Positions 25,767-32,171 of a stretch of 64,000 nucleotides of DNA are shown one piece after another. Each line of letters starts with the position of its first letter. Positions within the stretch are counted from its first letter, which is position 1. A program made the translations under genes and the position numbers. Under the pieces are notes generated by a model. The model was not told the origin of the DNA and did no database searches. It worked only from the letters and a program-made list of their open reading frames with translations. This stretch comes from Klebsormidium nitens (taxonomy: Eukaryota > Plantae > Klebsormidiophyceae), in contig DF237086.1 in NCBI GenBank assembly GCA_000708835.1, positions 111,079-175,078 on the forward strand, given 5' to 3'.

Positions 25767-26756
25767 GCGGGCGGCGAAGCGTCTGCCGGTGCGGGGTCGG
25801 CAGGTACACATTTATGGGTAGTTCCTGAAGCAGCAATGCCGCCAACACCTTGGCAAATGACACATCCGAGATTATGCACATTGTGTCGACTCCACATGCG
25901 ATTGAATTTCATTGCTGTCAAAGAATAAAGATCGCATCTCAACCACCAAGGAACGCAGCACAATGGCCTCGTCTCAATCTTAAGTGTCAGTCATGTAATG
26001 TAGGATTCAATTTAGGGTTATATAAGGTTATGCTGGCACGGCGGCTACCATGTTGGAGTGGCCGGATGGTTGCATCGGGTCCATATGGGATAGCTCAGTC
26101 CTGCATGGTGCACCTACCTTACAACTAGGCTCAATATCAGATCGTCCGCATAAAGGCTACACGCGTACATGGGTGGGTATTACGCGGATAATACTTCATA
26201 CGTGGGTATATAAAAACTAGTACCGTGCTCATAATAATCAGCACTATAGCCAAAGTGCATGAGGCGCGTTCGCAGTTGCACTGAGCCCATCATTTCATGG
26301 CATGCTGCATGCGGCACTGTGATGGTTTAGAAGCTGTATAACTTCTGCCAGACATGCTCAACCACCCCCAGAACTCATGGTGACAGCGAGCCTGGCAGCA
26401 TTCAACGGAAATGCACGTGCAATTGATGCAAGCGACATGTGCCGCCCTGGCAGAGACTCTCTGAGAACATTGCAAAAACAAAATCTGCTGTGAGCTGGGG
26501 AGTCCGGTCAGGCTTGAAACCACTGCATGCACTTAAATTCAAGATAGCTCATATGATAGGCAAATATAGCGCAGTTGAATCACAGCCGCCTTATCTGGCC
26601 CTCAGAATATGAGTATATTGAAGCAACACATCCACCTTTCTTCACCTTAGCAGCACGGAGAACCCATGTGGACCATGCCTTGTGCTCAGTTCCAACAACA
26701 ACATTCTTTGCCTGCTTCCGAAAAGGGGAAACCCAACCCGATCAAGGGCGCCCCGC

Positions 26757-29103
26757 CTACTTCTTCTTGCCAGCCTTGCCAGCCTTTCTACGGATGACCT
26801 CGCCCTGGAACTTGATACCCTTGCCCTTGTACGGCTCTGGCGGCCTCCACCGCCGAACGGACGCCGCAAACTGTCCGACCAACTCCTTGTCGCGCCCGGA
26901 GATGTTCATCCTCGTGTTGCCCTCTACCTTAACGTTGATACCCTCGGGGATCTCCATGACAACCGGGTGGCTGAAACCCAGGTTCATGGTTAGCGTCTGA
27001 CCCGCCACGGAGGCACGGTAACCAACACCAATCAGCTCTAGGTCCTTCTTGAAGCCGGTGGAGACGCCGTTGATCATGTTGGCCGTGAGGGTCCTGCGAT
27101 TACGGGTCAGGAAACGGTAAGAGGTGCTCGAAAGAGTGCTCCGGCAGCGCAAGTATTCCCTACGAGAGGATCTTCAGAGGATGACGAAGAAGCCCACAAG
27201 GCTGCCAGTCATGAGAAGTGGTCAGAAGAACTTTCCCGCAGAGATCTTTGCCTCAGTCTCACGAAAAGTATCAGCAAGAGGAGGTCATGGCAAAAACCTT
27301 TCAGCTCATACATTCCAACCAATTTTCAGAGAGCTGATTTGAACGTAGAGTAAGAGCAGGGCAACCGACGCGGGACGTTTCTAATCAAGCAAATTGGCAA
27401 CCTTTAATTGCACATCCAAAAACGTCCCTGGTTGCGCACCTTCACGATTACAAGCGATGAACAGCTATAGGCTTCATCAAAGCGCTTTTCCCAAAAGCAA
27501 ACCAACCCGCTCTGCCCTCACCTGAAGAGGCCATGCATCTGCCGCGACCGCCTCGTCTCATCTGTCCTGAACACCGACACCGACTCCCCTTCCTTCTCCA
27601 GCCTCACTTCACGGGGGTACTCCCGTGTGAGCAGCCCCAAGGGGCCCTTCGCCTCCAGGCTCTTGTCCTTCAGAGTGACGGTGACTCCCTTCGGGATGGG
27701 GATCGGCGCCTTGCCGATACGAGATTCTTTGCACACAATGGCAGGGGTAGGGAGCACCGCGCGCTGGCTGGTGGAGCAGACGGGGGGAAGATGGTGCGCT
27801 CCGGAGAGGAAAGTGTTTCTGTAGCAGACAGCGAGGAATAATATGTTCAGGTTCTCAGCTTACTATGCAGAAGGATAGGTTGGGGGAAGGGCCGTGTGGG
27901 AGTGCAAACGAGCCAGGGTCTCTCTCACCAAGGAACTACTCTTCTAATGAGCAGTAAAGAAGGTACTTGTGTCGTGGAAAGAGCGGTCCAATAGCTCCAA
28001 CATTCAATTGATGAGCAGAGTGCGTAATCTTGCCGAAAGTGGTGGTGTAACAATAGCAGGTTCTTTCCGCAATACCAATTCCAATCCGTCCAAAACTACC
28101 ACGTTCAAAAGCATACGGGCATTACAAAGCGGAGTCGTTGCAAGATTGTGACATCTGTAGAGAGCTACCTTGTTGACATCGTCTCTACGAAACGTTCCAG
28201 CCCACATTGCTGCTCTGCTAGCTGCCCCGTTGTGCCCAAGCAGGACTTAAGGTCGGACAATTCTGAAATGGAACTCTTATCCAAGTACGCACACTGAATG
28301 TAGCACCAGTGTCTCCAACAGTGACTCGTGAAAAGGAAGTCGTGGCTGAGCTGAAGTTGCATTGCAAACCAAGGGGGTAGCAGCTGATCCATCATCGGTG
28401 TCACATCAGCCGCAATGCAGTGCCTGAGGGGCATGCGTACAGCAACTCCTGCTTGCGCGCCCTTGCTAATCTCACAGCAATACTCACCATAGCGGACCGA
28501 AAGACTACAGGGCACTGACAGCAAATCTAACAGCACTATGACCACTTTGCGTCAAACCCCTAAAATGCAAATTTGACAGTACGCCAGAGGGCCTCCATAA
28601 ATAACAACTGACCTGGATGCCTGGAAGGATCCGCAACCCTGCAAGAAACAGGCAAGCGGGCTCGGTTATGCTGCTCGCTGACCTGTGACTTCTATGGCTA
28701 CTTTAGACCGTTACCAAGCGAACCCCAGACCATTGCAAAGGGTAAACAGCAAAATGCAGGTACATCATTAAAAGATTTTTTGCTCACACAATGTGTAGCA
28801 TGGGCCTAACCCTACCAAACCCAGCGATAAGTGCATTACAGCTCGAATGTTTGATGACGAAGATACCAGCAAATGGGCGACACATAGGCGGGCAAACGAG
28901 GGAACAGCGTCAACTGGACCTTCCCAATGCAGGAACACAGACGTGCAACTAGTCCCTACTGATAGGGTCCTCGTAGAGACAATGCGAAATGCACTTGGTG
29001 AGTGCAACATTGCTGAAAAGTTGTTCGCTGTGCGCACCTTGTCTAAAGCAGGAGTCCAGGACAAGGCCCCTGCACACGACCCTACAGCAGCCATCGCCGC
29101 CAT
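26757..29103 (-). CDS. RPL6: Plastid 50S ribosomal protein uL6 precursor (nuclear encoded)
   Basis: Firm exons are 27818-27522 ([26 protein letters not shown]) and 27093-26757 ([38 protein letters not shown]). A Ser/Ala-rich transit-like start, [12 protein letters not shown], begins at 29103. The 5' exon structure between 29103 and 27818 is unresolved. Confidence 0.9.
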
Positions 29104-30066
29104 GATGGCCCCTTTCTGCGCGTCCCCGCTCTTCTATCACATACACAGCGTCCGATATTCGGGCCCCTCTCGCCCAATACTAAACAGACACCCACTCAGG
29201 GCAGAAGTAAACTGGCCCAGTGCGGGGTACAGCTTCGAGAACCTGACCTTTCCCTTTGTTTATCTGTCCCCCACAGGCTCCGTCCACCCTGCTCCAAACA
29301 AACACACACGAGCCTGCTCCAAAAGAAGTATTCCTGAGCTGTTCAAAAGCTCAAGCAGAGCCTAAGGCTTCCAAGTTTCAAGCGCCGCCAAACTTCCAAG
29401 TCTGCCCTATTAGAATCTGACTTATCGGACGTATGGCATTGGAAACTGCTTGCGTATGATCTTCTGCTCTGGTAATATACTGCGCTTATAACGTTGTCCA
29501 ATGTCGACTCTCGAGCTCTCCCTTCGAACTCGGTAAGACAAGATATATTCAGATCACGCTTCACGGCTCGAGTCGCGGCCGGCGGCGGCCTCCTTATGAT
29601 CTTTTTGAGCCTGCATATCCGCATGTTTCAAGCGCGTACACCGCCTTGATAGATGCCAATTTCTTAGGTTCCAAAATCCACGAATTCAAGCCACTGGCAA
29701 ATTTTGAAAGGAGGTTTGCTACCAAGAAATCGAACCTCCTCCAGAACCTGCTCCAGAAATATTTAAGCGTTGCTTTCCCAGGACCATCTGCCCTCCCACC
29801 TGTTGACAGCATTGCTGCTTTTGAGGTGTTTCAATGCTGCACCTGGCACCACCACCCCGTAATGCTTTTGAAGGTTCCTGAGTTCAATTGAGATCAGGCT
29901 TGAAACTTGCTGAATTCTTCTGTGGCGCCCTGCAATTTGTAAAGTCTTCAAGTGATAAGTGGAGTGGTAAGTGCATAAAGGCACTAGATTCAACTCATCA
30001 AACTCAGGCAGGTGCGCTGATCGCTGGGGCGGTCAGATTCTCGAGACGATTGTACGCGGACGGAGG

Positions 30067-31175
30067 ATGGGGTCCATAGCAAGGAGAGAGCTGGTCAATC
30101 TGGCCGCTCTGGCATCCAGGCTTTTGCAGGCTGGTAGACGTTCTGGCGCTGTCGAGGGGCCTGCAAGCTCAGCTGTAGGTGCTGGGATGCACGGAAGGCT
30201 GCTGCATTCCAGTGGTGCAGCATGTGCGCAGAGTGCGGCGGCGCCAGCCTCCGCTACAGATGACAGGTGCGTTGACGGGAGGTTCTCCCATTGATTTTTC
30301 AGCCCTGGTCATACGATTCGTAAGTATGTTTATGCAGTAAGATTGAGCAACAGGAGGAACAGCATTTTCTAGCCGATGTCAGCAATATCCACTTCTCAAA
30401 AACATTGTAGATTGCAGCCTTTTTGCCACGTTTTGCTATCAGAGTGCCGTACCTTCGTGCCGCTGATGCTGGTAGGCGCTCCACAAAGTAAGCACACAGT
30501 TTTGAAGAGCGTCTTTCCAAAGATCAAGTGCAAGGGTAACGTCGCACCACTGCTTTTGCATTCACAGAGGATGAGTGCGAAAACTTCACTGTGTTGCAGA
30601 ACTAATGGAGACTGCTTTCATTCAGCGCTTATGCCTAGGCCAAATGCGCTGGCTTTGACAAGCTTCTGAGTAACAGGAACGAGTGCTGGAGTACAGGAAG
30701 TGTCCTCTTTTGTTGGATACCAGTCCTAGTTCTGGGACTAAACGTCCAGGCCAAATGAGTAATTGTAAGCCGAGAATTCCTCAAAGAGATTAACAGCCAG
30801 TTCTGCTAGATACTTGCTCAGGCCCATCTGCGTCATCGTTCTTGCAGGCCGATCGGCAAAGAGGGTGCACTCAGTCTGGAAGATTGCTGCTTCAAAGAGA
30901 TGGAACTTGTGGGGGTCGGTTACAGAGCATCGGTGAATGAACGAGATCTGGTGATGAACCTGGGTTACAGTCATCCAGTTATTTTAAAAATTCCAGAGGG
31001 TTTGACAGTCAAAGTAGAGAGAAATGTTAGGGTAACAATAGCGGGTTATGACCGAGAACTGATAGGGCGTTTCTGTGCAAACATACGGGACCAACGACGT
31101 CCAGAGCCATACAAGGGCAAGGGTATCCGGTACTCAGATGAGATTATCACCAAAAAGGTTGGGAAGAAGAAGTAG
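30067..31175 (+). CDS. Second uL6-family protein: C-terminal L6 domain only, with N-terminal organelle-targeting-like peptide (175 aa, 2 exons)
   Basis: Exon 30067-30266 (MGSIARRELVNLAALASRLLQAGRR..RLLHSS..DD-AG|GTGCGT) and exon 30848-31175 (after cttgcag) join in phase. Contains [37 protein letters not shown]. Confidence 0.8.
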
Positions 31176-32171
31176 ACAATTCACTGCATCCCCACTGGAT
31201 CTGATACAGGCGTGTGTTTGTTGTTTCTCCTATTGACCTGTGGCAAGTGTGAGACACTGAGATCTCAACTTCAGACAATTCTAATCGGACCCTTTGAGCA
31301 ATTGTATTTGCCATGCAGCTCGATGTCTGCTTGAACTTGAAGCGGACTCTGATCGTTCAATGATCAATTACGAGATTTGGAACGTACGGAAAAAAAACTG
31401 CAGATCATTCCCCCCAAAAGCTTGTAGGTTGTGAACTTGACATGACCAATGCGGCTTCTACTTCTTGCACAGTGTGAGGTCTACATAAGGATCGTGTGCA
31501 ATGTGGCAAAGATCATTGCAAGAAATCATACGAGTCGGATGAAATTTCGCTTTCGTTGAGTCAAAAGTGAGTCTTAGGCAGATCATGTGACAAAATGATC
31601 GGGGGCCACGACATGGCCGTAAACATTCGCATCGCCATCACGCCACATGCATTCGAGGCTGCATGCGCCACTGGCATTGTATATGACGAACTAAGTTCGG
31701 AACTTACAGCTTTCTGAAGCAATGATACGTCACGAGACATGCATCGATCGATCATTGCATGAATGTAACCGGCCACAGCCTAGAACATGGATCAGACCAC
31801 GCACTGACAGAGTTCTTCGTTGAAAGTCTTTATGTACCATTGCGGACGGCACAGTAGCTACACGACTAGACAGCTTCTGACTGGTCACGAAGTCCGCTGG
31901 TGCCGCTGCTGATAAGCAAGCATGCAAGCGCCCGCTGCCTTCTTCCACAGAATTCTGGTTGTGACGTCAGCCTACGTGAGCTGCTTACCTTGTTCAGACA
32001 CTCATATAAGCGTGCTTAGATTATAAAGGAGAGGCTTGTACCTGAGCCGCGTTCACACTGCCTGCTTTGCAGGTAGACCTGATGAATCTTGGATCATTTA
32101 TAGTGGCCGGGACATCTTGTCGACAAAGATTTATGTACAGAGTTTCCGATTGTGACCAGGCTACGTCAAAT

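Follow-up and report, generated by a model that had tools for sequence, protein, structure and literature searches.

The 64,000-nucleotide (nt) window of the Klebsormidium nitens genome analyzed here (contig DF237086.1 of GenBank assembly GCA_000708835.1, positions 111,079 to 175,078 of the forward strand) contains two genes for ribosomal protein uL6, and these two alone: a gene on the minus strand that, by its sequence, is the plastid uL6 gene (RPL6), and a divergently oriented gene at 30067-31175 on the plus strand, hereafter the candidate, which encodes an arginine-rich leader followed by the C-terminal half of uL6. The strain was formerly called K. flaccidum (PMC4052687). We conclude that the candidate very probably descends from its plastid neighbor, a conclusion that draws its weight from gene structure and position and not from the tree. 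With moderate confidence we further favor the reading that this inverted partial duplicate of RPL6 serves as the uL6 of the mitochondrial ribosome, its import into mitochondria being predicted from the leader. That the exon-level duplicate has also replaced an rpl6 gene of the mitochondrial DNA (mtDNA) in Klebsormidium, a plastid-to-mitochondrion substitution in a streptophyte alga, is a possibility that we put forward tentatively.

Structure, expression and conservation of the candidate gene

The spliced reading frame of the candidate is 528 nt long, runs over two exons and encodes a protein of 175 amino acids (aa). The parts of the gene, and the space that separates its transcript from that of RPL6, are as follows.

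29329..29620, no strand: space between the divergent transcripts; contigs of the neighbor end at 29318-29328 and those of the candidate begin at 29621-29731
29621..30066, plus strand: 5' leader of the candidate mRNA, 340-446 nt or longer; RNA contigs start at 29621 (X6) and 29731 (X12)
30067..30266, plus strand: coding part of exon 1; 66-aa presequence and AG, the first two bases of the split codon
30267..30847, plus strand: the sole intron, GT..AG, phase 2; positional counterpart of intron 3 of the neighbor; joint seen in three runs
30848..31175, plus strand: coding part of exon 2; third base of the split codon, 18-aa remnant, uL6 C-terminal domain and the stop codon TAG
31176..31341 (end approximate), plus strand: 3' untranslated region (UTR); RNA contigs reach 31290-31345

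Exon 2 encodes the second uL6 domain alone (PF00347, E 6.8e-21, 75 bits against a Pfam cut-off of 27), and no Pfam family matched exon 1. Compared with TIGR03654, the candidate covers positions 84-175 of 175 (E 8.5e-38), and its 129.8 bits stay below the equivalog cut-off of 168.55. The N-terminal domain is unmatched in the family models, and the candidate is thus not a full-length two-domain uL6, in agreement with the initial annotation of this locus, which had noted the absence of the N-terminal L6 domain. The 18-aa stretch that opens exon 2 is a degenerate remnant of the last helix of this domain. All invariant columns of the uL6 C-domain in alignment A1 are retained, and BLASTP aligns the C-domains of the candidate and its neighbor without gaps at 51 identities in 85 positions (60%, E 3e-40), bearing out the ungapped 53 of 88 that had earlier been counted by hand. 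The remaining traits that had been described for this gene were recovered as well, namely divergent start codons at a distance of 964 nt (30067 on the plus strand, 29103 on the minus strand), an Arg-rich leader with an RLLHSS motif (present as GRLLHSS in the 66-aa leader of exon 1), a lower G+C content at third codon positions (GC3) in the L6 exon (0.48 in exon 2, compared to 0.80 in the exons of the neighbor) and a KKVGKKK end. This C-terminus departs from the tail GK[AVR]GKK(K) of plastid and cyanobacterial uL6.

Contigs of four public runs were placed on positions 26500-31400, and three of these runs behave as RNA, with an exon depth far above the intron depth. The candidate joint from 30263 to 30845 (cut +3, GT..AG) was spliced in contigs of all three RNA-like runs, as were the three joints of the neighbor; the expression of the candidate, the lack of which would have spoken against the initial annotation, is thus documented by spliced RNA. 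In these runs exon depth was about 50-190 for the candidate and about 470-2100 for the neighbor, and since the ratio between them shifts from run to run, from about 1:4 to 1:40, the two genes are not tightly co-regulated. Their transcript starts lie approximately 300-400 nt apart, and the space at 29329..29620 is probably a shared bidirectional promoter region. An in-frame stop at 29968 lies upstream of the candidate ATG. The 5' leader of the transcript also contains two to four short upstream open reading frames, with ATGs at 29623, 29653, 29834, and 29862, which might damp translation.

Two orthologs of the candidate were identified, one in a Logan assembly (L002), with 97% identity in exon 2 and 85% in the leader, and one in a JGI metagenome contig (L001), with 90% identity in exon 2 and 53% in the leader. 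Both retain the leader exon as well as the head-to-head plastid uL6 neighbor, bringing the number of genomes with this layout to three. A metagenome scan for further orthologs of the candidate found bacterial L6 alone. By the Nei-Gojobori method, exon 2 of the candidate and of L002 differ by a nonsynonymous divergence (dN) of 0.011 and a synonymous divergence (dS) of 0.81, giving a dN/dS of 0.013, while the comparison with L001 yields a dN of 0.06 with saturated synonymous sites. The candidate is under strong purifying selection, and the comparison of dN/dS with relatives that the initial annotation had recommended thus points to tight constraint.

These observations also decide whether the candidate could be a pseudogene, a functionless part-copy of the plastid gene in decay. 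A truncated copy that adjoins its parent and has a GC3 below that of the parent might be expected of such a relic, but the reading frame is intact, spliced transcripts occur in three runs, the dN/dS is 0.013, the protein has stayed 90% identical to that of L001 even though synonymous sites are saturated, and three genomes share both the leader exon and the layout. We therefore discarded this explanation, the probability of which we regard as negligible.

No identical protein was found among 5.8 billion public proteins, the best match (97%) being from a related alga. Public protein sets thus appear to lack the candidate, and the public annotation of this genome, which the gene described here would correct, probably lacks it too.

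A shared intron and the origin of the candidate

The only intron of the candidate is in phase 2, splits an AG|G codon and is followed by 18 full codons and then by E-L-V-G-V-G-Y; intron 3 of the neighbor is likewise in phase 2, splits an AG|G codon for Arg and is followed by 18 full codons and then by E-L-I-G-V-G-Y. Corchorus (L092) and Trebouxia (L091) carry this phase-2 intron too, at the equivalent Arg codon of their plastid uL6 genes, as found by mapping each gene onto its own protein. Since it is common to an angiosperm and a chlorophyte, the intron, as judged from these gene structures, is older than the divergence of chlorophytes from streptophytes and characterizes the nuclear plastid uL6 gene. 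The orthologs in L001 and L002 keep the place and the phase of the intron of the candidate. The split codon of L001 is GG|G, indicating that Arg itself is no longer constrained, even though place and phase have been kept.

Genes of mtDNA are without spliceosomal introns, and a gene of mtDNA origin would therefore need to gain an intron at the same codon and in the same phase. In addition, a local inverted duplication predicts that the copy lies next to its paralog, whereas an independent insertion at this place would be very unlikely. The final 21 nt of the two coding sequences, TAG included, are 90% alike. The inverted local duplication and truncation of plastid uL6 that had been suggested in the initial annotation is thus well supported by the shared phase-2 intron, by the head-to-head layout in three genomes, by the best tree and by the library matches.

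A phmmer search against 1.84 billion cluster representatives, performed without a length filter, returned 7400 L6 clusters, with the own cluster of the candidate as the sole close match (206 bits) and the next at 126 bits. At least 12 of the next ~22 matches were plastid uL6 (uL6c) proteins of streptophytes, including Triticum uL6c with an identity of 63%. When the PDB was searched, spinach uL6c came out on top with 120 bits, and the mitochondrial uL6 (uL6m) proteins of Chlamydomonas and Arabidopsis reached 109 and 79 bits, respectively. Among the matches listed in a scan of genome contigs (sample of 80 loci), the bacteria nearest to the candidate are scattered over many phyla. A protein-atlas search for a true mitochondrial uL6 gave bacterial fragment clusters alone, and no stray organelle contigs were found in a scan of viral contigs.

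In a careful maximum-likelihood tree on a two-domain backbone (70 rows and 179 columns), for which the candidate was cut at KEMELVG, the candidate joined green plastid uL6 with an ultrafast bootstrap (UFBoot) of 93 and a Shimodaira-Hasegawa-like approximate likelihood-ratio test (SH-aLRT) support of 91. Constraining the candidate and the neighbor to form a clade in this alignment gave a log-likelihood (lnL) 0.42 better than the free search, which was the highest likelihood found. With the C-domain alone, a quick tree (109 columns, 134 rows) placed the candidate with plastid uL6 (SH-aLRT 87), and a grouping of the candidate with all green plastid uL6 (p 0.40) and a grouping with its neighbor (p 0.44) both went unrejected in approximately unbiased (AU) tests. 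The phylogeny that had been called for as a check thus favors the plastid side in its best tree (93/91) and leaves a placement with alphaproteobacteria unrejected.

Several points weigh against a plastid descent of the candidate or against the mitochondrial role that we assign to it. The trees left out mtDNA-encoded rpl6 and land-plant uL6m. On the C-domain alone, the long stem of the candidate shifts with taxon sampling, and the careful tree of this domain (78 rows) sets the candidate beside proteobacteria, weakly (44/74). Joining the candidate to alphaproteobacteria in the two-domain alignment costs 9.8 lnL, a difference for which the AU test (p 0.33) gives no rejection. The candidate has none of the two green-plastid signature columns, these diagnostic columns being too few to decide. 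No relic of the N-domain exon was found nearby and no non-coding similarity between the two genes, and the tail ends in GKKK as in alphaproteobacteria, without the GKAGKKK of plastids and cyanobacteria; such a tail would result if a single AGK repeat unit had been lost. As to function, plastid and mitochondrial leaders overlap in their properties in green algae. Finally, several ribosomal protein genes are gone from the mtDNAs of Klebsormidiales, as described by Turmel et al. (2013; PMC3814193). The text of that paper, which does not give the rpl6 status of Klebsormidium mtDNA, lists rps8, rps10, rpl2, and rps19, but not rpl6, among those genes of the cluster that both Klebsormidiales mtDNAs have lost, so that rpl6 may survive in at least one of them.

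The initial annotation had offered a second origin, the transfer of a true mitochondrial rpl6 to the nucleus. Such a gene would be of alphaproteobacterial descent, would have been reduced to the C-domain beforehand, and would have landed beside the plastid paralog by chance and gained a presequence exon. We consider this origin quite improbable. Its attraction is that the GKKK tail and the NIR.. stretch look alphaproteobacterial, that one C-domain tree sets the candidate beside proteobacteria, that the AU test does not reject the alphaproteobacterial clade, and that land plants have repeatedly lost rpl6 from their mtDNA, one such loss falling in the ancestor of seed plants (bioRxiv 10.1101/2022.12.23.521604). 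However, it requires a chance insertion directly beside the plastid paralog, in a layout that is conserved in three genomes, as well as the gain of an intron at the exact codon and phase of an ancient plastid-gene intron, and it is chiefly this combination of intron and adjacency that disfavors it. Moreover, exon 2 extends about nine residues further toward the N-terminus than the position at which the C-domain-only protein of Arabidopsis begins in the alignment, and both the best trees and the nearest library matches are of plastid type.

Leader, putative mitochondrial role and known systems

The first 45 aa of the leader contain six Arg and no Lys. Its amphipathic helix has a hydrophobic moment of 0.50 over LVNLAALASRLLQAGRRS (residues 9-26), as compared to 0.28-0.33 for the transit peptide of the neighbor. 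Two blocks, RELVNLAxLASRLLQ and GRLLHxSG, are conserved across species and survive in L001 despite a leader identity of 53%; the latter presumably resembles a processing-peptidase site with Arg at -3. Being Arg-rich, amphipathic, and partly conserved, the leader looks mitochondrial, and once a plastid origin of the gene is granted, mitochondrial targeting appears likely from its sequence. Since the invariant uL6 columns have been kept under tight constraint, the C-domain most likely still sits on a ribosome of bacterial type. The plastid ribosome is already served by the full-length and far higher expressed uL6c, and the mitochondrial ribosome is the other bacterial-type ribosome of the cell. 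We also counted toward a mitochondrial address that the candidate is expressed at a lower level than the plastid copy (4-40 times) and that its C-domain-only format matches that of Arabidopsis uL6m.

In the sequence of events that we propose, an inverted partial duplication of the adjacent plastid RPL6 at the DNA level would have given rise to the nuclear candidate. The copy would have retained the last exon, which codes for the C-terminal domain, and the acceptor site of the ancient phase-2 intron in front of it, and would have acquired a new first exon coding for the amphipathic Arg-rich leader. The gene would now be transcribed divergently from the plastid gene and spliced once to yield a 175-aa precursor, the leader of which would drive import into mitochondria and be removed by cleavage close to the conserved GRLLH|SS. 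What is left, a mature protein of about 130 aa, may then fill the position of uL6 in the large subunit of the mitochondrial ribosome, next to the sarcin-ricin loop and the factor-binding site, where the mitoribosomes of flowering plants have a C-domain-only uL6m.

The same origin could also have led elsewhere, with a plastid-derived half-size uL6 acting in plastids, in both organelles or at another site as a ribosome-associated or assembly factor and not as uL6m, which we hold to be unlikely. Intron and trees agree with this possibility as well as they do with a mitoribosomal protein, the overlap between the two kinds of leaders in green algae leaves room for it, and Klebsormidium mtDNA may still hold rpl6. 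On the other hand, the leader differs sharply from the transit peptide of the neighbor in Arg content and amphipathicity, and a genuine place on a ribosome is indicated by the very strong purifying selection on a domain with the full set of invariant uL6 residues. Within plastids the protein would face competition from the full-length uL6c, whose expression is 4-40 times higher, whereas the mitochondrial ribosome is the one other bacterial-type ribosome available, and its Arabidopsis version uses a C-domain-only uL6m. We thus prefer the mitoribosomal role.

Among known proteins, the candidate resembles the uL6c of green plants, represented by its neighbor and by the spinach protein (PDB 5mmi/4v61), in family, in the phase-2 intron before the C-domain exon, in sequence (60-63% identity) and in its grouping with this clade in the best tree. 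It differs from uL6c in having no N-terminal domain, in a leader that is Arg-rich and amphipathic instead of Ser/Thr/Pro-rich, in a GKKK instead of a GKAGKKK tail, in its GC3 (0.48 vs. 0.80) and in a transcript depth 4-40 times lower. The presumed functional equivalent is Arabidopsis uL6m (PDB 6xyw, chain Af), which shares the C-domain-only architecture and is 102 aa long, with residues 5-100 aligning to the C-domain of the candidate; the initial annotation had described land-plant uL6m as a C-domain-only form of ~100 aa, and this holds for Arabidopsis. Unlike the candidate, however, the 102-aa chain leaves no space for a long N-terminal leader, and its match to the candidate is weaker than that of spinach uL6c (79 vs. 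120 bits). The gene for Arabidopsis uL6m is AT2G18400 (PMC6953067). Chlamydomonas uL6m (UniProt A8J503, 207 aa, PDB 7pkt) provides an example of a nuclear-encoded mitoribosomal uL6 in a green alga, the role proposed for the candidate, but it has both uL6 domains (modeled residues, 32-195). This mitoribosomal protein carries the database name 'Plastid ribosomal protein L6'.

The kind of event that we propose, the substitution of an organellar ribosomal protein, is already known. In rosids, Adams and colleagues reportedly described in 2002 the replacement of mitochondrial rps13 by a nuclear duplicate of chloroplast type. Likewise, a duplicated nuclear gene of chloroplast type replaced mitochondrial rpl10 in Brassicaceae and monocots (PMC2818186). 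As in these cases, a nuclear paralog of plastid descent would take over for a mitoribosomal protein. In contrast to them, the host is a streptophyte alga and not an angiosperm, the protein is uL6, the copy is a one-exon, half-size one, parent and copy still stand head-to-head, and both retargeting and the loss of the mtDNA gene are inferred for the candidate. The protein, the alga, the single-exon copy and the breakpoint at an intron are what is unusual here. The known substitutions of mitochondrial by plastid ribosomal proteins come from a few angiosperm lineages, and their steps have usually been blurred by time, whereas the scar of the birth of the candidate is still readable in the neighboring parent and copy, in a start at an ancient parental intron and in a half-protein product. 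If our reading is true, uL6 and a streptophyte alga join the known substitutions of organellar ribosomal proteins, and reduction of uL6 to its C-domain took place twice, here and separately in land-plant uL6m, implying that the streptophyte mitoribosome needs only this half of uL6. The candidate would then be a natural test of how much uL6 a mitoribosome requires. With its localization confirmed, it would become a textbook case, in an alga close to the root of the land-plant lineage, of a mitochondrial gene that could spring from a plastid one thanks to the exon structure of the latter.

The neighboring plastid gene and further observations

The plastid uL6 gene next to the candidate is composed of the following parts.

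29038..29103, minus strand: exon 1 (coding), where the transit peptide begins; full exon to ~29328
28613..28638, minus strand: exon 2, a micro-exon of 26 nt; both flanking joints seen in three runs
27522..27818, minus strand: exon 3, rest of the transit peptide and N-terminal domain (PF00347; TIGR03654 1-68)
27094..27521, minus strand: intron 3 (phase 2), splitting the Arg codon AG|G; counterpart of the candidate intron
26757..27093, minus strand: coding part of exon 4, uL6 C-terminal domain, tail KAGKAGKKK and TAG; 3' UTR to ~26514

Spliced, its four coding exons form a coding sequence of 726 nt for a 241-aa precursor, in which a transit peptide rich in Ser, Thr, Ala, and Pro is followed by both uL6 domains; exon 3 ends in the AG of the split Arg codon. 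The micro-exon falls inside the transit-peptide region, and the frame closes only when it is included. The best matches of the protein are land-plant uL6c (69-72%), Trebouxia (69%), and cyanobacteria (65-67%). An Rfam scan of the window gave no match.

At the opening of candidate exon 2 (30849-30863), PIGK and the Arg of the split codon together resemble the N-terminal SRIGK of full-length uL6. We read this resemblance as probably due to chance, since the counterpart in L001 is LAPKG and the motif is lost. One tree was set aside, as MAFFT had aligned the RPIGK of the candidate to the N-terminal SRIGK of full-length L6.

In a plant-associated metatranscriptome (X20), contigs were 90-95% identical to the plastid uL6 exons at 26759-27086 and 27637-27784, indicating that relatives of this alga are present in the sample. 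One short contig of X20 overlaps the end of the candidate (31101-31133), with flanks that do not fit the window. Two unusual proteins stood among the nearest matches of the candidate. In P0244, a 210-aa uL6 from an MMETSP marine eukaryote, the first half has the look of an additional, degenerate C-domain in place of the normal N-domain. The other, P0245, is 680 aa long and ends in a uL6 C-domain.

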